Part shown: piece by piece, positions 1 to 12,840 of the stretch
How positions within the stretch are numbered: position 1 is the first letter of the stretch
Layout: each line of letters opens with the position of its first letter
Assembly (NCBI GenBank): GCA_011109175.1
Contig: RDEW01000040.1
Location: forward strand, 1-64,000
Source of the DNA: Dicyema japonicum
Lineage: Eukaryota > Animalia > Dicyemida
DNA: 64,000 nt
Direction of reading: 5' to 3'
Notes under the pieces: model-generated
What the model saw: the letters and a program-made list of their open reading frames with translations, nothing else
Database searches by the model: none
Told to the model about the DNA's origin: nothing
Position numbers and translations under genes: made by a program

Positions 1-680
1 TCCAAATTGGAAATTATCTGTTTGTGACGGAGTATTTAACTTGTTTATCAAAAACTTCACTTGGATTCTTGTCACTTTGTGAGGAGATTCTGAAGATCAT
101 AAATGATGAATATACTTCTGGTGATTGGTTCTATACTGGGATTACGTACCTTATTCCAAAAGTGGATATATGTGATTCATTCAAGGAGTTAGGGTCAATG
201 CCTAATCTATGTGAACTATTGACAAATTGTGTGAACAAAAAATTATCAGAATATATTGAATCATACGATTTGGTAAGCGAAAACCAACTAGGAACTCGAA
301 TAATGTGCAGGCCATTATCAATCAATACTCAAATCAACGAAATAAAAACAATTTGACTTATACTTGTATCGACGTGAAAAAAGACTTTGACTCCGTCGAT
401 CATCATTGGACCAGGGATTACAGAATTCTGGTCTCCCCTTATGGATTGTTACATTTATTGAGAAAATTGTCACGAAATGAAAATTATGGTAAATTTAAAA
501 AGCAAAATGTTGGGAGAAGTTAAAATAAAAAGAGAATTCTAAAATTTGAACAAGTCGATAAAAACCTTCGCAAATTCATATGGACAGCCACATCCACTGC
601 AACAGGCAAAAAAGAAAAGTCTTGTCAATGCAAAATACCTCCTAAGAAGGAATTCTACATGTCATTAATTTAACGAAAAC
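1..680 (+). mobile_element. Decayed RT fragment of an RLE-type (R4/Dong-like) non-LTR retrotransposon; left copy of the inverted duplication
   Basis: Frameshifted WFYTGITYLIPK, VSENQLGT, CIDVKKDFDSVDH (RT motif); the right copy also retains LNLPINKFGRGL. Confidence 0.7.
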
Positions 681-689
681 ACACTATCG

Positions 690-2300
690 TAGAATTCATT
701 TCCCGAAAGTACAACATTGTAAATGTGAAGGTAAAAATAGCTGCGGCGTTATGTGGTTCACGGCTTCTGTAAGTATTGGTAACGCCCAGAGAGCACATAA
801 TGTTCATCCAAAGAACCATTAAACACTTACCTCCGTGGAAACTGTCTCCCGGCGGCACGCACATTCATCCTCATCTACCCGGAAGGAACCCCTAGCCCAC
901 CACAAGAAACTGAGCACGGTTTATCAACTAAATGTCGATGGAGTAAGGGGCAACTGCGCTCTCTCCTGGCGGAGCTGAAGATGATCGACGTGGCTTTGAA
1001 ACAAGAGACGAAACTGCCTATAAACAGTCCTACCCGGTGTTCCCTGAATACAAGTCAATACGGACTGACCGGATGAGGAAGCGGGGTGGTGGCCTACTCA
1101 TTTTATATCGGAAAGACCTTAAATGTGTGGACATTACTTCAGTGATGAAGAATATTTTGGGAGACGACGATGTTACTAAGTCAATGAAGTCTCACTTGGA
1201 ACAACAAATAGAACCATTACCTTTGTGAACGTCTATATGCCCCCACCTCATTCTTGCCCGAAGCACTACACTATGCCCAATTTATCTACTTTGGCTTTTT
1301 GAACGACGTGATCATTGGCGGGGATATCAATGGCTGGCAAGTCAACCGTCCCACTCAAAATGAAAAGTACTACTTTCGCAGACAGGACCTTTCACGGTCA
1401 TGAATGACCTGTCAAAACATACGATAACCCCCTTTAGGGAGTCAGACCAACTAACATCTACATACATCACGCTTTGTCTCCCGGCCTGGCGGCAATGTCG
1501 ACTTGGTCAGTCACTTACAACTCAAGAAGTGACCATAATGCGATCCTTTTGAAGATCAAGAGAGAATCGTCAACTAAGATGAGGTCTACATAACAATTCA
1601 ACTACAAACTAGCAGACTGGAGACTTTACCGTACACTTACTGACAACCTACTGCAGGACCTGGATGGCATTACTTCCATGGACAAAGTAGTCGCTTATGT
1701 AAACCGCACTATCTTGGATGCGAGATCACTATCTGTACCTAACACCACCTTAAGTACACCAGGGGATATGGCAGGTCGGCATTAACCAAGGAAAAAAACG
1801 AACTCAAAAAGTCTGGCAGATTAACTACTGAGAATAAGTTTAAACTGAAAACTTTGAACAATGAACTAAAAGACAGGGAGGTAAAAGCACAAATACCAAA
1901 ATGGAAGCATGTATTCTCTTCGTTGAATAGAAATAGACCCACTACTGAAATTTGAAAGACCATCCGAGACGACTCAAGAGTGGATGAAAGATCGTCCGAG
2001 GTGGATCAAAGCCCATAGATTTAAACAACTTAATAAATACTATGTGAAAATATCCCATAAGACCATAAGATGTCGGATGTATCCCTGAAATATCTCAGTA
2101 AACCGAAAAAGTAACCGGATACGATTCACTTCACGGAAAACGACGTGAGATATGTATTGAAAGCCATTAAAACAACCTATTCTAACAGAACGGATAAGAT
2201 CTCAATCATCCTCCTTAAGTGGAGATGGCAAAAAGCCATAAGGAATGATGCTTTTCCCATATTCACACGGAAAATCATTTGTCTGGGATGTAACCTGTGT
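690..2300 (+). mobile_element. APE-type LINE (Jockey/I-like), 5' part, decayed
   Basis: VYQLNVDG, ALKQETKL, PEYKSIRTDRMRKRGGGLLIL, IIGGDING, RSDHNAILLKIK; multiple frameshifts. Confidence 0.75.
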
Positions 2301-2399
2301 GGATACCTTCTCCGCTTCACTCCTTCCAAGAAACCTGGATATCAAGCCAACACAGCGGAATCAGCCAAGATCCAGAAGCACTCGGCGATTGGACCGATT

Positions 2400-2940
2400 C
2401 ACACCAGTAGCCATAGAAACGTAGGGAGCTTGTAGGATCCCTCACTGAGGCTTTGTTGAAAGAGATTGGAAGGAAACTAGAGAGCCGAAAAAACCCCCAC
2501 GAATCGTTCCGGCTAAGGCAACGAGTCGGGATTGCAATATTACGCAATTCTATCTGCAAATGCGTAATTATTTAAATTTTTTAAACACCGATGCCGATGC
2601 GGGAAAACAGTCGATGCGAAGGGTTTGCACCCGCTGTCCTGCAGAAGAAGCGCCGGAAGAGGATCACGTCACGCTGGTCTGAACGATGTGATCGTCAAAG
2701 CTCTGAAGGCTACTGGCTTCCCAGCAAAGCTTAAACCAGTGGGTCTCGATCGAGGAGATGGAAAGAAACCTGACGGGATGACCCTTTTCACTTTCACATC
2801 CGGATGATCTTTGGTCTGGGACGCAACTTGTGTTGACATATTCTCAAGCACGAATCTTTTCAAATCAGTTCAGACACCTGGAGCAGCTACTTCGACCGCG
2901 GAAAATTCAAAAATTAAAAATATTCCTGCCTCGAGGACCG
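2400..2940 (+). mobile_element. CRE/SLACS-clade non-LTR fragments (zinc knuckle plus restriction-like endonuclease); a C-terminal piece precedes an earlier piece
   Basis: RLRQRVGIAILRNS (about 2510-2560), then [46 protein letters not shown]. Confidence 0.75.
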
Positions 2941-2942
2941 CT

Positions 2943-3138
2943 ACCGATTACTATTTTTATATTCGGAATTTTCTCAGGATTTGAAAAATCTTATACTCAA
3001 TGTGTCACTGTGGGAGCACTGTTACACTATGGAATACTAACTCAGTTTTTCTGGATGCTTTCCCAGACTATTATTCATTATATAACATTCATCAAAGTTA
3101 TTGGCATGAACATGGATAATCTGATTTTAAAGATTCTT
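2943..3138 (+). pseudogene. Fragment of an adhesion/secretin-family GPCR 7TM region (about TM2-TM4) wedged between transposon remnants
   Basis: CVTVGALLHYGILTQFFWMLSQTIIHYITFIKV matches the family-B C..V..LLHY.....F.WM motif; no flanking exons recognised. Confidence 0.55.
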
Positions 3139-3915
3139 CTAATTAACTGTAGTTAAGTTTTTGTTAATTTTTAGGAATCTGCTTCCTATCATTTCATAAA
3201 GAACATTCTTATAACATGATTTGAATGAGTTTATGATCCCCATATCTAAAGGTTGAAGAAGTGCTGTTATGTTTTTAGGAAGTTTAAGAAATGATAAGTT
3301 TGAATATTCCTGACATTTGTGACAACGTACATTATCCATAATAATCAAAATTTTCCTGTTTTTTTGAACCATTTCGAAGTTTATTCTTTGTAGCCATGTA
3401 TCAAAAATATCCATCGTCATCCATGCATTTTTGAAGCTGTATATTAACCCAACACAATATACCCCATAATCTTCTGTATTTATGTTTTTTAAGTATCTTG
3501 GGGATTTCAATTTCCCGATAACAAGAGGTTTTAATTTTTCGCCTTCACGGCTGCAGCATAAAAGAACTGAAACTCGTTCTTTACTTTTCATTTTACCAAA
3601 ACAATCATCATTTGAATAGACAAATGATCTACATGAATTTTTTAATAAAAAGAGAAGTTTCATCGCAGTTAAAATATCTTTTTTATCGTATTCTTCAAAT
3701 AAACTGTCGTAATTGTTAAAAAAAACTCTTTAAGTTTTTTTTTGTCTGATGAGTTTTTTTCACCCGAAATTACTTTGAATAATAAATTCGCTTTTTAAAT
3801 CGATCAAGCCATCCATTTGATGCATTGAAATCATTAAACTGAAATTTGGCAGCAATCTTTTTTGCAATATTTTTGAGGAGACATCCAGATACTGAAATCC
3901 CATCCTTTTTCTAAA
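3139..3915 (-). mobile_element. Tigger/pogo (CENP-B-like DDE) transposase, decayed
   Basis: FNASNGWLDRFKKR, KERVSVLLCC..GEKLKPLVIGK, NAWMT, LIIMDN..CH, LPKNITALLQPLDMGIINSFK. Confidence 0.9.
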
Positions 3916-5718
3916 AAGAGGAGGAGAAAGAGAGCATTACAGTCGCTCATATGTACACGGAAGTTACACGTTAGCCGTGACACTAACCTGTTTATCTTCA
4001 AGGAAGTTATTCTCCTAACCTTCTTTATGGGTTCGAGGGGTGGTTCTTCTGTCCGAAGAGGGACAAGATCATATACCTCCTAGAGAAGACTAGAAGTGCT
4101 GCAATTAAGCACTTCTTAAAAAAGAAACTGAGATACTGTCTAAACGAGGACAAAAACAAGCTCCTGGAACCGATTAGCAAGATTGTGGAAGATCGGATCA
4201 ATAGTTTCAGGATGAGATCAAAGGTCCAGGACACATAATAAAGCTGGGAGAAACGTTCAAAAAGATAAATAATAAAAAGGAGGGAGGGTCCGTGTGGATT
4301 CCAAGCCGTATGGTAGGACTCAGATGTAATACCCTCCAGAAATCTCCTTAACTCTTTTGTCAATTAATCGTTGTTGTTGTTGTTATTGCAATAAATTTTT
4401 GAACTTTTGTCTTTGTTAGGTTTTCAATCCTTTTGATGATGTGCAGTTGTTCAATATTTGAGGTTTTCATGGATATATTGTGATTCCTTTGGTTTCATTA
4501 AGACTCCTGTAACCTCATGTTTTGGACTCATAAGTTTGACTTATCAGCCCGGAAACGAAATGGCCCCGGGTTCTCATACTAATCGACAATTATTATTATT
4601 TTACTAATGAATTAATTCTTTTTTCATATATTTCCGCTGTTTTTACAAAATTGAAATTATATCTTACTTTTGATAACCTAATTTATTAATGAAAAAGAAT
4701 TCTTAGAAGGAATTTTGTTTAAACTGTCAATAAATACAGCTTTGTGTTTTCACCACTTCAGACATACGCACGCAACAAGCTTTTGATAAAAAGAAAATGA
4801 ACAACTTTATATGATTCACCAATTTACAGTTCAACTTTAAATGAATCACCAACTTACAGTTTATGGAGGTGATAAAAAATGGAGAGGTCGAATTATCAAC
4901 TCCAATAAAAATGGTAATCAACTCATAAATCTTTTCATAGGTTTTTAAAAATGAACACAGAATTGGATTTTATGAATATTTTGGAAAATGGATGCATATA
5001 ATATAAGTCGCCTATTGGAAAATATTACATGTCTAATTTGCTAATGAAATAATTATTGGTTTTAAAATTTTTTTATGAATAATTAGAAACAACTATTCTC
5101 GCCACTGGTATCTTGGCAAAATATGAATTCACTTGGACACGATCTGGTTCTGAGAATATTAACGTTAGTATACCTGGCGCTTTGCTCGACAAGACATCTT
5201 GGTTTAAAATTTCTACCGGACGAAATTTCAAAGAGCAAAACAGCAATATAAATGAAAACATTTTCTATGATCTCATTTTCTCGAAATTTATATAGATAAC
5301 GAAAGAATTTAAGAAATTGTTAATGAATATGTTCTATAAATGATTAATTGCAAAAATAAAATTTTACCTATCATTCTATTACTTCTTAGTGACGATAATA
5401 TAAGTTCTCTAAATTTGAGTTAAACAGGATTAATTTCGTGGCCACCTCAACCCTGAGACTGATTAGCCACTAGAGTAACTAGTTAATCAATTCATTTTTC
5501 TTATAAATTTATTATTTTTTAAGATTGATTGATAATTTTGTGGTAAATTATAAAACACAATCAGAAATGTCACATATTGGTTGAGTTTCAGCATCATATT
5601 ACCAAACCAAATAGTTAAATATCCAATTTGAATAATCCTCTATTATTTCTTAAGAAGGTCAGTTGATATAAGCAACATACACCATAAAAATCAATCTCAA
5701 GTCACAAATTAGTTGGGT

Positions 5719-6735
5719 TTTTGTTGAGTACACTTTATTTGTGACCAAAACTCACTTTCTTGCAAAAATATGATTTTTTAATAAGATTGATTTCAAATTG
5801 TGAACATTGACATATATATATTTGTGAACAAAAATACTTTAAAATTGGCAAGAATTTTTTAGAGTTATTAGTTTTATGATTGAAGATCCTAATATTTTGT
5901 AAAAATAGACATAGACTTCGGAGTGTTGTATTGTGTGTATTCGAATTCATTCACGTTTGTTGCGAAGGAGAATGGATTAGTGTTGGAATTCTATACTCCA
6001 AGATTTTGAGACTTTTTTACAGATATCTCTGAGTTTTACAGCAAGAATCCCATATATTTCATAATTGGCAATATTAAATCATACTCCGAGGGGACTCGTT
6101 CGCAATCCACGCATCAGGTATCCTCAACTGACATTTGTTTAATTGTTAAAAAATTATTTTGTTTAAAAAAATAGTTGGTATCTTCGTTTTTTTCAAAAGT
6201 GATATGATTCTATTCCTGTTCGTTGAGAAAAACGTTACGGTTTTAGTACTCGAAGCTATTTTTCATTTTTTTGAATATGTAGTTAACTATCTGGCACTTA
6301 TAACACATGGCCATAATCTTCTTAAATTGTATTCCGTTCACTTCCGCCTTCGAACTGATTGGCAGCTTGCAAACAGAAAGAACACGAAACACTATTAAAG
6401 GAAACACTCGTATTAAGTTAAGGGGAAGTAATACGAAACGACAATGCTTTTTAACCGACTTCCACCAGGAAAATCTAACCCAAGAAGTTGCTTAACTGCA
6501 GGTGAATCGATTATGAGGATTTGTTCCAAAGCAAGCACATGAGCTTTCCCATTTCTATTGAAATGATCAATAGAGATATTTCAAACTTTAGTAGTCGTTT
6601 TTATTGAGTACACTTTATTTTGTGACCAAAACTCACTTTCTTGCAAAAAATATGATTATTTGATAAGATTGATGTCAAATTGTGAACATTGACATATATA
6701 TTTTTTGTGAACAAAAATTCTTAAAAATTGGCAAG
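5719..6735. repeat. About 135-bp direct repeat pair (5719-5852 and 6599-6735)
   Basis: Both copies read TTGAGTACACTTTATTT..GTGACCAAAACTCACTTTCTTGCAAAAA..ATAAGATTGAT..CAAATTGTGAACATTGACATATATA..AAAATTGGCAAG. Confidence 0.92.
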
Positions 6736-7075
6736 TAAGTACTTTTTTGAGAAATCCTCCTTCATTATCTTTCTTAATAAAAGCCGGGATTTCAGGAAGA
6801 AACTAACGTCCGTTTACTTTGCCGATAGTTTCCCCGATTTTAACAACTTTGATACTAAGACTAAGTTATCGATGGAAAGGAGAATTGAGAGATACGTCGA
6901 AGCCCGTCTGATTCAGTCATTTTTGAAATTTCAGGTTCATTTTATGTATATATGCGATGTTGTTGGATCGTTTTCTACCAAACATTTCCATAAATCAGTA
7001 AAGCTGTTGATTTTGAAATACAATCTGAACATGTACTACATTCTGTAAGTCGCGATGCTCTAATAACTCTAATTT

Positions 7076-7345
7076 TTACAAATTTAATAGAATTACTTTC
7101 TTGTGATATAATGAAAGTGTAGTGAATCTTTCTGTCACCCGTTCTTGGACAAGGTCGCTTGAGTTTATTGAGATTTGCATATTTTTTGACATTTGATGGG
7201 CAAAGTAAAGGGATATGACAGACTCTGCCTTTCTATCCAATATCGAAAGATCTCTTAGAAGAGAATTGAACCTCGCGAAATACTTTGATTGAGACAGAGG
7301 CTCGTAATGGAGGTGATCAGAGGAAACACTCACAAAATCTGGCAT
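7076..7345 (-). CDS. Unidentified ORF, possibly the first exon of an orphan gene
   Basis: 89-codon ATG-led ORF in AT-rich context with a GTAATT donor-like site near its end; no homology recognised; downstream exons unresolved. Confidence 0.3.
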   Translation of the reverse strand: MPDFVSVSSDHLHYEPLSQSKYFARFNSLLRDLSILDRKAESVISLYFAHQMSKNMQISINSSDLVQERVTERFTTLSLYHKKVILLNL

Positions 7346-7739
7346 TTTAGTAAAATGACTATAGTTGTTTTTTATTTAAAATTAAATTTTGAAGCCAAAA
7401 ACGAACTCGACTTTTAATGAAGCGCGATCGTTCTCGTTTTCTCACTAAACACTGTTCATAAATTCCGCATGTTTTATAAGATTTTTAGTCTTTAGTTTAG
7501 AATTCAAGGGTTTCAAGACCCAATCTCTGGTTTTAAAAGACGCTCCCATATTTTAGTTCCTTCTTCGCTTTTTAACCATCTTTGAGAGCCATTATTCAGG
7601 ATTGGCTCCTTTTTTGCTTTATCTTGAATGTTTAAGGATTCACATGAAAGCGAATAAGAAACAGTATTGAACACAATTTATTGAGATTTTAGTCAATGAT
7701 TTAAATCGTGATGAACCTTGATGACTAAAGGACAGATTA

Positions 7740-7872
7740 ATTTTCTCGCGTCTTGCCAAACTTTCTGTGTGTTCTAAACACGGGATTATACTGTTGGATC
7801 TCTGGGAACGCCCGTCATTGTTACTTGCGTTTTGTTAGTCATCGGTTTCCTTCACTTCACTTGAATGTAATG
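7740..7872 (-). repeat. Unclassified dispersed repeat, related copy at about 58930-59050
   Basis: CTGTTGGATCTCTGGGAACGCCCG..CGTTTTGTTAGTCATCGGTTT..TTCACT..GTAAATAAATA vs CTGTCGGATCTCTGGGAGCGTCCG..CGTTCTTGTTAGCCATCGGTTT..TTCACT..GTAAATAAATA. Confidence 0.65.
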
Positions 7873-7884
7873 TAAATAAATAGC

Positions 7885-7990
7885 AAACAGCGCAGTGTAA
7901 TAAGTTCAGAGTCCGAGTTCGAATCTCAGTGCTTTCTATTCCGGTTGTAGGTTCAACGTATCTACAATACTTCTGGATAGAAGAGCGACG
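7885..7990 (+). mobile_element. 3'-truncated SINE head (same family as 20755 and 47795 copies)
   Basis: 7915-7989 aligns gap-free with 20766-20840 at 59/75 identities (manual count); B-box GAGTTCGAATCTC. Confidence 0.8.
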
Positions 7991-8025
7991 TTAGGGTTAG
8001 GGTTAGGGTTAGGGTTAGGGTTAGG
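7991..8025 (+). repeat. Interstitial telomeric tract (TTAGGG)5TTAGG
   Basis: Perfect ancestral metazoan telomere repeat; the only such tract in the window. Confidence 0.97.
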
Positions 8026-8057
8026 ACGGGCGGGCGTAACAAGTAACAATGACGGGC
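8026..8057. other. Templated junction filler (inverted copies of 7808-7827)
   Basis: 8040-8057 CAAGTAACAATGACGGGC is the exact reverse complement of 7810-7827; ACGGGC and GGGCGT are further pieces of the same template. Confidence 0.85.
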
Positions 8058-9779
8058 ACGGTAAAGTCTCCAGTCTGCTCGTTTGTAGTTGAATTGTTAT
8101 GGGACCTCCTCCTAGTTGACGTTTCTCTCTTGATCTTCAAAAGGATCGCATTATGGTCACTTCTTGAGTTGTAAGTGACTGACCAAGTCGACATTGCAGC
8201 CAGGCCGGGAGAACAAAGCGTGATGTATGTAGAAGTTAGTTGGTCTGACTCCCTAAAGGGGTTATCGTATGTTTTGACAGGTCATTCATGACCGTGAAAA
8301 GTCCTGTCTGCGAAAGTAGTACTTTTCATCTTGAGTGGGACGGTTGACTTGCCAGCCATTGATATCCCCGCCAATGATCACGTCGTTCAAAAAAGCCAAA
8401 GTAGATAAATTGGGCATAGTGTAGTGCTTCGGGCAAGAACGAGGTGGGGGCACATAGACGTTCACAAAGGTAATTGGTTCTATTTGTTGTTCCAAGTGAG
8501 ACTTCATTGACTTTAGTAACATCGTCGTCTCCCAAAATATTCTTCATCACTGAAGTAATGTCCACACATTTAAGGTCTTTCCGATATAAAATGAGTAGGC
8601 CACCACCCCGCTTCCTCATCCGGTCAGTCCGTATTGACTTGTATTCAGGGAACACCGGGGTAGGACTGTTTATAGGCAGCTTCGTCTCTTGTTTCAAAGC
8701 CACGTCGATCTTCAGCTCCGCCAGGAGAGAGCGCAGTTGCCCCTTACTCCATCGACATTTAGTTGATAAACCGTGCTCAGTTTCTTGTGGTGGGCTAGGG
8801 GTTCCTTCCGGGTAGATGAGGATGAATGTGCGTGCCGCCGGGGAGACAGTTTCCACGGAGGTAAGTGTTTAATGGTTCTTTGGATGAACATTATGTGCTC
8901 TCTGGGCGTTACCAATAGTTACAGAAGCCGTGAACCACATAACGCCGCAGCTATTTTTACCTTCACATTTACAATGTTGTACTTTCGGGAAATGAATTCT
9001 ACGATAGTGTGTTTTCGTTAAATTAATGACATGTAGAATTCCTTCTTAGGAGGTATTTTGCATTGTTCCAAGTCACCATAAAATTGGAGGAGCATTCGTT
9101 CTGCTTTATTACTGACGGACTCGAGGCCTCTTCCAAATTTATTTATTGGTAGATTAAGACTTTCTTTTTTGCCGGTTGCAGTGGATGTGGCTGTCCACAT
9201 GAATTTGCGAATGTTTTTATCGACCTGTTCAAATTTTAGAATTCTCTTTTTATTTTAACTTCTCCCAACATTTTGCTTTTTAAATTTAACCATAATTTCC
9301 ATTTCGTGACAATTTTCTCAATAAATGTGACAATCCATCAGGGGAGACCAGAATTCTGTAATCCCTGGTCCAATGATGATCGACGGAGTCAAAGTCTTTT
9401 TTCACGTCGATACAAGTATAAGTCAAATTGTTTCCATTTCGTTGATTTGAGTATTGATTGATAATGGCCTGCACATTATTCGAGTTCCTAGTTGGTTTTC
9501 GCTTACCAAATCGTATGATTCAATATATTCTGATAATTTTTTGTTCACACAATTTGTCAATAGTTCACATAGATTAGGCATTGACCCTAACTCCTTGAAT
9601 GAATCACATATATCCACTTTTGGAATAAGGTACGTAATCCCAGTATAGAACCAATAACCAGAAGTATATTCATCATTTATGATCTTCAGAATTTCCTCAC
9701 AAAGTGACAAGAATCCAAGTGGAAGTTTTTGATAAACAAGTTAAATACTCCGTCACAAACAGATAATTTCCAATTTGGA
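8058..9779 (-). repeat. Inverted duplicate of 1-1633 (chimeric R4-like RT plus APE-LINE)
   Basis: Position 1 pairs with 9779 and 1633 with 8058; near-identical with scattered substitutions and small indels; about 90 bp (9066-9155) missing from the left copy. Confidence 0.97.
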
Positions 9780-9885
9780 AGGATCTGTATAAGTGATTGC
9801 ATTATTTCCAATTTGGAAGGATCTGAGAATTTATATTAGTATATGACAATACAATTTTAGTTGGAAATTCATTTAAATTATTTTT

Positions 9886-12840
9886 CGGTTGAGCTGGTGA
9901 CTCAATGTCTGGAAAACACAGTATCAAGCCATTGGACTTCTCCCTTCTCACATTTAACGTCAGAGGACTCTCTAGCGTTTCGAAACGGAAGGAACTGGTC
10001 GAGGATCTTTCAAAATACAAGATTTCAATCGCCTGTCTTCAGGAGACTAAACTAATCAACGGGATCGAAAAACAAAATGGGAACTTTCGACTAATTTTCC
10101 TTCCAGGTGGAAACAAGCACTATGGGCTAGGATTTGCCGTTAAGAATGATCTATCCAAGAGAGTCTGCCGATATTACAGTGTGAATGATAGAATCGGGAT
10201 GTTGCAATTGAAACTGGATGACCTCAACCCGTCGAAGAAATATGTAACTATAATAAACGTTTACGCCCTCACAGTGGATGGTTTAATAAAAACCCTGAGA
10301 GATTGATGATTTTTACACCAGTCTTTCTGCTGTGTTCTCCAAGTATGCTCTCTCAACATTAGTAATGATCGCAAAAGATCTAAATGCGAAAGCTGGCACC
10401 CAGGTTACGACCGATGAGACATTCATGGGAAAGCATGGTAGGGGGAAAAAAAATCTCCCGGGAACTCTACTAGCTAACTTCTGTGAAACGAACAACCTAT
10501 TTTTATGCAATACAGCCTTCATGCATCCAGCCAGACATAAATCTACGTGGTCGGAACACAGAAGAAATCCCGAAGGGCGAGTGATAAATATGTACAACCA
10601 GATCGACTATATGCAGGCAAAAAGATCGAGGAATATACTTGATGCACGACCTTATGGTGGATCGATTATGACAGCGACTACGAAATGGTTATTGATAGAC
10701 TTTCTCTAAAGAGATTTTTGGTACTACAAAGAACGAAATGGAAGCACATTGAAACCACAGAACCCAACTATAGACGTTATAACTTGGAATCCTTAATAAG
10801 TCAATCAGAAGGGGCCCTAGCATTCAAAGAATATCTGGATGCAGAACTAGAAAACATGCCTACAGATTTGCCGCCCGGAAAATCCTGGGATTTTGTAAAG
10901 CAGTCAATACATAAAGGAGCCAATCTGCATTGAAAGAACATGAGAAAATCCCATCGCACAATGAAATTTACACGGTGAAGGACCTTGCCAATAAACAGAA
11001 GACCATATGGATGCTATATTAAAATACTGACGATTCGAACGTAAAATCAAAATTGCGGCTAGAAAGAAAAACTATCAAAGCAAAAATAAGAAAAACTATA
11101 CGCCAGCATAACAGAAATAGAGCACTGGACCAGATTAAGAAGATAGAATCTCTCAAGGACAACGCTAGATTCTACGAGGCTGTGAGACAGATGAAAGGAA
11201 AGAGACCCCATCAACCGAAATGATAAGAGATGACAAAGGAACGCAGATTGTGGACCAAAGGAAGTGGCGAAATTATCGCTGCCCACTTTGGAAATCTTTT
11301 CAATCCAAGGAACGACACTATCATCCTAGAACGAGGAAAATGAAGTTGAACTTGCGAGTTCCAAGTTGAAAAACAACAGGATTCCTGGCCCCGAGGGACT
11401 TGATGGTGAATTCTTCAAATATAGAACCCAAAAGCTGTATGAAAGTATCGCTAGGATCCTGAATGAAATGTACTATTATGGTCACACGCTGACCCTGGGA
11501 GAAAGTATCTTGATACCTGTACAGAAGGCGAATAAACCAAGAGCTCAGATGGATAACCTCCGTCCAGTCATATTAATAAATTCACTTCGGAAAATTCTAG
11601 CGAACATAACATTACAAAGGATGGAAGGACGCCTAGATACTTCTCTGTCGCTATACCACAGCGGATTCCGAAAAAGAAGATCTACTTCCGATGTTTTATG
11701 GTCCCAGAAATGTAGATCTGTGACCGTTCAAAAGTTCAAAATGTCTACAATTATCCTCGGAATCGACATTTCGAGGGCCTTCGACTTTGTCGACAGACGG
11801 AGACTAATACTGGTTTTGGAAATTTTCCTAGACGCTTCCATGTCAGAATTGCCACCACCCTACTAGCTGATACTTGGCTCACTGTAAGAGTCGGGGGAGC
11901 CTTGTCTCGCCGATTTGAGACGACTGTTGGCACTCCACATGGAGACCCATTATCACCTATCCTTTTTGTAATATAGCTTTACAGGAGTCAAAACCGATAA
12001 TGGGTGAAAAGACAAACATTATTGCGTATGCTGACGACGTAGACTTTATTTCAAACGACAAAATACCGCTCACCCGCTTGATGGAAGAAGTGCCTGGAAG
12101 ACTAGCCGAATGGTTCCTAACAGTAAATCCGGACAAGACTGAGGTAACTGAACTCAATAGAGAAGATACAAGGACGGAGGTACTGGCGCAAGTGTAAAAA
12201 GCTTGGCTCCCTCCTAGGAGACCATAAAGAAATTACGAGAAGGAAAACCCTGTCACAAACTGCCCTCTCCAGATTGAAGAACACATGGCTCCACAAAAAA
12301 GGCCTTGACATTATAACAAAAACTCGATTATACAACTCGCTTGTGAAACCCATACTACTGTATAACGCTGGTACCAAGGCCTGCTCAAGAAATGAACTGA
12401 AGAGGCTTAATGCGTTTCATAGAGACCAACTACGGCATATGATGTTCGAAAGAAGTGATACGAGGATGTCATCTAATCTTTTTTATGAGAGGACGAAGAC
12501 CTCAGAAATTTCTAATAAGATTCTGGATACACGATGGAGGCTTTTCGGTCATATTCTACGACTGGACCTAGACGCCCCGCGAACGTAGCCATGGAGGATT
12601 ACTTCATGTTGGAGGCCCCCAGTTTCCGTGGTCGCCCAAGGACGACACTGGCAGTCGTTCTCGACGAGGACTTCGAAGAAATGGGACAGCATCTTGGAAG
12701 TGGAGAGGATCTTGACTGGTTGCGCACTGCGACTTTGAATAGGAGGAAGTGGATGAAACTAACCAGTGATTTGCTAACTCGTGTTGCACATGCTTTGTCA
12801 AGTCCTATGACATAGCGATAAGTGCTTATAATAATAATAT
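9886..12840 (+). mobile_element. Near full-length RTE-clade LINE (APE+RT), frameshifted
   Basis: LLTFNVRGL, IACLQETK, HYGLGFAV, YNQIDY, NLRPVILINSLRKIL, GIDISRAFD, PHGDPLSP, YADDVDF, RWRLFGHILR, GRPRTTL; TAA-repeat tail. Confidence 0.92.

Follow-up and report, generated by a model that had tools for sequence, protein, structure and literature searches.

A short TTAGGG tract between inverted arms in Dicyema japonicum: a probable scar of chromosome-end repair

In sister-chromatid telomere fusion, a few telomere repeats survive on the longer chromatid, the deletion in its sister reaches several kb into the subtelomere, and templated inserts result from alternative end joining with polymerase theta (PMC5855704). 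Sister fusions in human crisis cells were described by Capper 2007, Letsolo 2010 and Liddiard 2016, which are reviewed in PMC5855704. Fold-back inverted duplications beside terminal deletions have spacers of 766-70,466 bp, with a median of 3,428 bp (Hermetz et al. 2014, PMC3907307). The human fold-back cases carry occasional short inverted local inserts and show 2-8 bp of microhomology at the spacer-inversion junction; no telomere repeats are found at that junction, and the telomere is added at the far end (PMC3907307). Short interstitial telomeric sequences, studied by Nergadze and colleagues, are attributed to telomerase acting at breaks (PMC7215372, PMC8537989). On the telomeres of dicyemids we found nothing in the literature searched.

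The locus described here belongs to the first 64 kb of scaffold C313 of the Dicyema japonicum assembly (67,542,437 bases, 377 scaffolds), and the stretch C313:1-64000 is referred to below as the window. Pooled animals had been sequenced and assembled twice, with Platanus from Illumina data and with Falcon from PacBio RS II data; once the two assemblies had been merged, SSPACE and SSPACE-LongRead served for scaffolding, GapCloser for closing gaps and HaploMerger for haplotype reduction (PMC6736024). Sequences with octopus read coverage were discarded as host decontamination, and the heterozygosity of the genome was given as 1.24% (PMC6736024). The 64-kb window contains 0 Ns. The features of the locus and its immediate context are as follows, in window coordinates.

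1..1632, forward strand: arm A, made up of the end of a family-V transposon (about 1-743, internally deleted) and the first part of a full family X transposon
744..2219, unstranded: complete copy of family X, about 1.48 kb, uninterrupted across 1632/1633, where arm B is cut
1633..7990 (to 8057 with tract and filler), forward strand: spacer between the arms, a 6.4 kb transposon mosaic that is single-copy in the assembly
2830-3153: 7tm_2 fragment (Pfam)
3142-3663: DDE_1 (pogo-like) fragment (Pfam)
7810..7827, forward strand: template of the filler, also found at the same place in a paralogue on C310
7885..7990, forward strand: SINE-like repeat with tRNA-promoter-like boxes and dispersed copies, cut at 7990, the end of the family's conserved core
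7991..8025, forward strand: perfect (TTAGGG)5.8 tract, from direct reading and TRF, with the G-strand pointing right in the 5' to 3' direction
8026..8039, reverse strand: first part of the filler, in which 8026-8037, by direct reading, apparently corresponds to 7808-7815 in reverse complement, GGGC being present twice, with AA next
8040..8057, reverse strand: second part of the filler, an 18-nt exact inverted copy of 7810-7827
8058..9779, reverse strand: arm B, family X cut internally (8058-8946) and then an internally deleted family V (8960-9786)
9877..12815, forward strand: LINE with APE endonuclease and RT (context), more than 40 copies at 85-93%, with its left-hand end at 9877

TRF calls the tract at 7990-8025, with a period of 6, 6.0 copies and 100% matches, and the G at 7990 is common to the SINE-like repeat and the tract, a one-base overlap. 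The G-rich strand runs from left to right, away from the SINE-like repeat, and the tract is interstitial, with non-telomeric sequence on either side. Direct reading and TRF thus confirm what an earlier note on this DNA had described, namely 5.8 perfect repeats, a G-strand leading away from the SINE and a single shared G. No other perfect TTAGGG run of at least 4 repeats is present in the 67.5-Mb assembly, and the tract is its longest perfect telomere-type run. TTAGGG x3 with up to 2 mismatches gave 120 matches genome-wide versus 2 for the reversed control, and this enrichment indicates that TTAGGG is very probably the species' telomere motif. On this evidence D. japonicum very probably uses TTAGGG as its telomere repeat, and the terminal telomeres absent from the assembly are simply unassembled. 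Because decontamination removed sequences covered by octopus reads, pure TTAGGG arrays would be expected to have been stripped. A search with the PF12009 (telomerase RBD) profile returned no match in the genome; the same profile matched no control genome either.

The sequence to the left of the tract has a close paralogue that preserves the intact arrangement. The nearest relative of the SINE-like repeat lies at C310:472545-472676, and the homology spans more than 1.1 kb of upstream flank as well, 6745-7990 being 96% identical to C310:471437-472676. At the break point the C310 paralogue is uninterrupted and reads ...GAGCGACG then CCGAATCAG..., whereas the window copy continues from the same G into TTAGGG. 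The proposal that a SINE is cut at 7990 is therefore borne out with respect to the cut, since the paralogue runs on. As for the SINE identity, neither ARAGORN nor Rfam calls a tRNA in the repeat, so the label comes down to box-like motifs and dispersed copies. No close counterpart of the C310 continuation past the break was found elsewhere in the assembly, which is incomplete, and this suggests that the distal part of the window copy was either lost or left unassembled. C310 offers a TTAGGG-less 'empty site', that of a paralogue and not of an orthologue, in which the flanks of the tract are not contiguous as they would be around a simple insertion; the right flank is inverted local sequence. 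Hairpins of the SINE had also been put forward as break sites. The TGAC-GCC-GTCA hairpin occurs in some members of the SINE-like family only, is absent from the closest paralogue (C310) and has a folding energy within the range of shuffles (z from -1.0 to 0.0); on these grounds the hairpin was rejected as a fragile site.

The filler beyond the tract points back to the left-hand side of the locus. Matches to the 18-mer of its second part number 2 in the window versus 0.00 expected, and in the whole 67.5 Mb there are only 3 occurrences, which are the template, the C310 paralogue and the filler itself. The distance from the template downstream to its copy is 212 nt, and to the break at 7990 it is 163 nt. 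Since the 18-mer is limited to three genomic sites, the filler was copied locally, and the whole of its 32 nt is a genuine local templated insertion in inverted orientation. A local copy physically ties the right-hand partner to the left-hand sequence, and such an arrangement is hard for an assembler to produce. The inverted templated filler that had been noticed after the tract is upheld by the exact correspondence of 8040-8057 with 7810-7827 and by the genomic restriction of the 18-mer. Its derivation from three overlapping pieces of 7808-7827 holds for the 18-nt piece; the piece or pieces within 8026-8037 are seen by direct reading, the match to 7808-7815 being too short for a significance test of its own. 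No clear microhomology was seen at the joint between the filler and arm B (8057/8058). An interpretation of the 18-nt pair as the terminal inverted repeats of a small transposon was ruled out, as the 18-mer occurs only 3 times in the genome.

What, then, is the partner to which the filler is joined? Arms A and B are about 98% identical; 30 substitutions and 12 indel events, among them one of 87 bp, separate the two, and their substitution divergence of 1.5-1.8% is near the reported heterozygosity of 1.24%. The earlier note placed an inverted duplicate directly after the filler; its start at 8058 is correct, and the position paired with that start is actually 1632 and not 1633. Family X is represented by at least 48 copies at 73-92%, with its full length taken from an adjacent match pair (C356:429514-430989), and has no match in Pfam. 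All other X copies, arm A included, run on with conserved sequence past the point equivalent to 8058, which means that arm B is truncated inside the element. Other copies of family V are 70-85% identical and have 517 bp extra between the two matched pieces. The closest relatives of the arms are each other, at 98% versus at most 92% (X) and at most 84% (V) elsewhere, and both the X/V junction and the internal deletion in V are private to them. The shared private junction, the private deletion and the 98% identity indicate that the arms are either segmental twins or haplotypes of a single locus, and rule out independent insertions of one transposon. Another candidate, that arm B is a LINE 3' end that had been primed on the tail of the telomere, had arisen as many X matches began at 8058; it was rejected given that other copies continue, and the shared start is merely the end of the homologous part of the query. 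Missing from the earlier note is the point that each arm combines two transposon families.

The two arms differ in ways that bear on how they were assembled. Arm A lacks 87 bp found in arm B, and because family V copies carry that stretch, the deletion in arm A is real. Eight further single bases of arm B are missing from arm A, each within a homopolymer or dinucleotide run, which is the signature of a low-coverage PacBio consensus at a contig end. As the window is C313:1-64000, arm A is cut by the scaffold start. The inverted counterpart of the LINE would be expected about 100 bp past that start, which would explain why the scaffold stops there. A second copy of 9775-9885, the sequence just beyond arm B, was not found in the assembly.

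The spacer consists of the rest of family X, the 7tm_2 and pogo-like DDE_1 fragments, local repeats and two C310-paralogous blocks, 2219-3914 (98%) and 6745-7990 (96%), whose order is permuted relative to C310. Such permuted blocks would fit a unit from a tandemly repeated region. The spacer is ruled out as an allelic haplotig of the C310 locus, given that the blocks are permuted and bounded by different transposons. The anatomy of the locus likewise rules out a simple PacBio missed-adapter palindrome, as a 6.4-kb non-palindromic spacer separates the arms.

On balance, we think it probable that the feature is the real scar of one fold-back or sister-fusion event of chromosome-end repair and not a working element. 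A terminal break would have taken away the distal SINE-like repeat and everything further out, and telomerase may then have seeded TTAGGG on the end by pairing via the terminal G; alternatively, an established neo-telomere may have eroded to about six repeats. The unprotected 3' tail would then have folded onto its own strand, where a polymerase would have copied 7808-7827 in two or three short rounds, in alternative end joining of the polymerase-theta type. Ligation would have followed, either to the sister chromatid or to the same molecule folded back, with the partner resected 6.4 kb into family X. The outcome would be a single-copy spacer flanked by inverted arms, the telomere seed having been caught at the junction, and the event would be clonal in the sequenced population. 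Matches to DNA_pol_A, the family-A polymerase domain, are present on C223, C334 and C371 and may belong to POLQ or to POLG.

Three elements of this scheme are supported by the sequence, namely the addition of telomere repeats directly onto a broken, non-telomeric end, the local and inverted templating of the filler, and the identity of the arm B partner as an inverted copy of nearby sequence. The junction had been interpreted earlier as a fossil of telomerase acting at a break. Telomere addition to a broken non-telomeric end stands, as does its polarity, and the connection to hairpins and DNA elimination does not; a single event of sister-chromatid short-telomere fusion or fold-back seems a closer fit than an end that was healed and then later re-joined. 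Given the substitution divergence, either the event is old or each arm stems from another haplotype in the assembly. A sister fusion produces a dicentric chromosome if nothing further happens, and any later events would be invisible here, since the scaffold begins within arm A. The cut of family X at a non-boundary position, the unique inverted 18-mer, the lack of Ns and the 87-bp difference between the arms argue for a real molecule. Weighing against the scar are its location 8 kb into a scaffold, in an assembly of hybrid origin that went through merging, gap closing and haplotype reduction, the homopolymer deletions of arm A, an arm divergence close to the heterozygosity (so that the arms may be two haplotypes), the lack of clear microhomology at the arm B joint, and the failure to find a telomerase gene with PF12009, a search that is uninformative.

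A scar of fold-back or sister fusion would share traits with several of the systems described above, and it would depart from each of them. As in sister-chromatid fusion, TTAGGG repeats are few on one partner, its counterpart repeats that partner's sequence in inverted form and short of several kb, and a templated insert lies between them. The human sister fusions are rare PCR products from somatic cells, whereas the present feature is found in the assembly of an invertebrate parasite and so is clonal or germline. The telomere repeats, moreover, sit on a truncated dispersed repeat and not on a native subtelomere, and 7990 is a putative former chromosome end. The inverted arms, the 6.4-kb spacer, which falls within about 1-70 kb and is single-copy according to the assembly, and the inverted local insert all resemble a fold-back duplication. 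Fold-back systems lose distal sequence, and here the distal half of the repeat and its flank are absent from the (incomplete) assembly. In contrast to the human fold-back cases, the junction here contains the telomere seed and shows no evident microhomology. The 32-nt insert, which comprises one or two inverted copies from about 200 nt away with a small slippage, is like the products of polymerase-theta snap-back joining; that polymerase theta was the enzyme is something that we only infer. Like short interstitial telomeric sequences, the tract is a short perfect internal (TTAGGG)n that is absent from a related 'empty' locus (PMC7215372, PMC8537989). Unlike the classic insertions, which have contiguous flanks, the right flank of the tract is inverted from 6.4 kb away and the locus used for comparison is a paralogue.

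The last of these comparisons leads to an alternative in which the junction is real and arose without fold-back or sister fusion. A two-ended break may have been repaired into a pre-existing inverted segmental duplicate, telomerase having laid down a short interstitial telomeric sequence and alternative end joining having closed the break. The arm divergence of 1.5-1.8% lets the duplication predate the junction, and the surroundings, a dense mosaic of transposons and duplications with permuted paralogous blocks, are suited to such a history. Short interstitial telomeric sequences at vertebrate break-repair sites are, moreover, well documented (PMC7215372, PMC8537989). We nevertheless regard two-ended repair as unlikely. 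It needs the coincidence that the break was joined to a break in the only other private X/V composite, 6.4 kb off and inverted, and it leaves unaccounted for that the flanks are not contiguous at the paralogous 'empty' site, as they are in classic insertions.

To about the same degree we doubt an assembly or haplotype artefact, in which the first 8 kb of the scaffold are a separate end piece or haplotig that was wrongly attached, in inverted orientation, to C313. The piece could even be a true chromosome end with its telomere, misjoined in merging, scaffolding or gap closing. A hybrid pipeline with SSPACE, GapCloser and HaploMerger, the location at a scaffold start and the homopolymer-deletion errors of arm A would all be in keeping with a misjoin of this kind; yet assemblers do not invent an inverted 18-mer from 212 nt away that is otherwise near-unique (C310 paralogue), and the window has no Ns. 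Also in favour of an artefact are the divergence of the arms, which is near heterozygosity, and the lack of another copy of the sequence just beyond arm B; against it, the filler meets family X at a position that is not a repeat boundary, and the 87-bp difference identifies the arms as two real sequences.

It is far less probable that the tract marks programmed or somatic breakage, with a developmentally made end and a de novo telomere captured from bulk dicyemid DNA that is mostly somatic. Somatic cells of dicyemids are reported to eliminate chromatin and to contain extrachromosomal circles (Noto 2003; Awata 2006; both cited in PMC6543705). At the present locus telomere repeats lie directly on non-telomeric DNA, and since terminal telomeres are otherwise absent from the assembly, other such ends could have been lost. 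At the programmed breaks of Ascaris and ciliates, too, telomere repeats are placed straight on non-telomeric DNA with minimal overlap; unlike those breaks, the present one does not recur, shares no motif with other sites and is not terminal. The tract is interstitial and followed by a specific, clonal filler, and is not an end. No significant motif or hairpin was found at the 7990 break, and nothing points to recurrent breakage directed by a motif.

The genome-wide distribution of TTAGGG tracts also counts against programmed breakage, as this is a single case. Four other perfect (TTAGGG)3 tracts are present, on C202, C317, C329 and C334, and none elsewhere is longer. Their flanks are unrelated, with nothing shared among the four and the degenerate arrays, and no inverted arms occur within the 6-10 kb around each of the four. 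No other TTAGGG-type tract abuts a SINE-like repeat, the nearest copies being about 400-900 nt off, so that a genome-wide link between short TTAGGG tracts and this SINE, as the earlier note envisaged for testing, is not seen. With a single (TTAGGG)n run of at least 4 repeats, and with other tracts that have different flanks and no inverted arms, programmed DNA elimination, or a somatic break site as the earlier note had it, is not supported as an explanation by the sequence data. We consider it just as doubtful that 7990 is a real or recent chromosome end, produced when a break within dispersed repeats received TTAGGG de novo, and that the assembly caught a product of somatic chromatin elimination in which fusion, end-to-end or between sisters, regularly occurs as a by-product.

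Finally, there is next to no probability that the tract is borne by a mobile element, as a transposon terminus or part of a telomere-targeting retroelement: a satellite with a TTAGGC/TTAGGG core does exist on C310, but the closest paralogue, also on C310, has no tract, family X copies do not end at 8058, and a genome-wide search for the fixed terminus envisaged earlier found no second unit of SINE, tract and filler, a uniqueness that argues against a transposon terminus.

As we read it, the feature is a fresh example of an already known kind of repair scar, and its significance would rise sharply only if 7990 proved, from reads or from a comparison of tissues, to be a true or somatic chromosome end. 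Should reads fail to confirm the junction, the first 8 kb of scaffold C313 should be flagged as misassembled. A junction confirmed by reads would support TTAGGG as the telomere repeat of the species even though no terminal telomere has been assembled, and it would be a concrete locus at which a difference between dicyemid soma and germline may be tested by PCR. If reads do confirm it, the junction would provide, at a single locus, a dicyemid record of TTAGGG addition, snap-back templated end joining and fold-back or sister fusion, in a lineage whose telomere biology has not been described in the literature searched.

Beyond the TTAGGG run of the window, telomere-type sequence occurs elsewhere in the Dicyema japonicum assembly at places that include the following:

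C202:1841-1882, second-longest telomere-type tract, (TTAGGG)3 TTAAGG (TTAGGG)2
C316:65336-65578, C8:45952 and C24:1209666-1209737, long degenerate TTAGGG-like arrays
C310:259814-262160, tandem satellite, period ~450-900 bp

The scaffold that carries the second-longest tract, C202, is only 6,104 bp long, and the G-strand of the tract points toward the nearer scaffold end, which is 1.8 kb distant; a search for inverted repeats around this tract found none. The degenerate arrays could be old telomere tracts, either interstitial or subtelomeric, and every unit of the C310 satellite contains a TTAGGC/TTAGGG core. Terminal (TTAGGG)n arrays are absent from the whole assembly, and we infer that they may have been lost when decontamination removed sequences covered by octopus reads.

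At the start of the window's own scaffold, arm A (1-1632) carries eight 1-base deletions when compared with its inverted twin, arm B (8058-9779). All eight fall within homopolymer or dinucleotide runs, which suggests that the PacBio consensus at the scaffold start is unpolished. A 25-nt direct repeat (96% identity, copies 38 nt apart) that includes the near-palindrome TCCAAATTGGA lies at 9763-9825, exactly where the scaffold start meets arm A.

The arms and their surroundings contain copies of several transposon families:

744-2219 and 8058-8946, repeat family X, length ~1.48 kb
3142-3663, minus strand, DDE_1 transposase fragment, Pogo/Tigger-like (E 2e-28)
9877-12815 and further, plus strand, high-copy LINE carrying both an APE endonuclease and a reverse transcriptase

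Family X has at least 48 copies (73-92% identity) and gave no match in a Pfam search. Relatives of the DDE_1 fragment are found at 93-95% across many scaffolds. The LINE has more than 40 copies (85-93%), and its reading frame is split among several ORFs.

Two blocks of the spacer between the arms, 2219-3914 and 6745-7990, are 96-98% identical to a single locus on another scaffold (C310:471437-475194), relative to which their order is permuted. The locus belongs to a cluster of local repeats at C310:471-495 kb, and the presence of 7tm_2 (secretin-type receptor) fragments among these repeats suggests, from sequence, that the cluster is a tandemly duplicated receptor-gene region.
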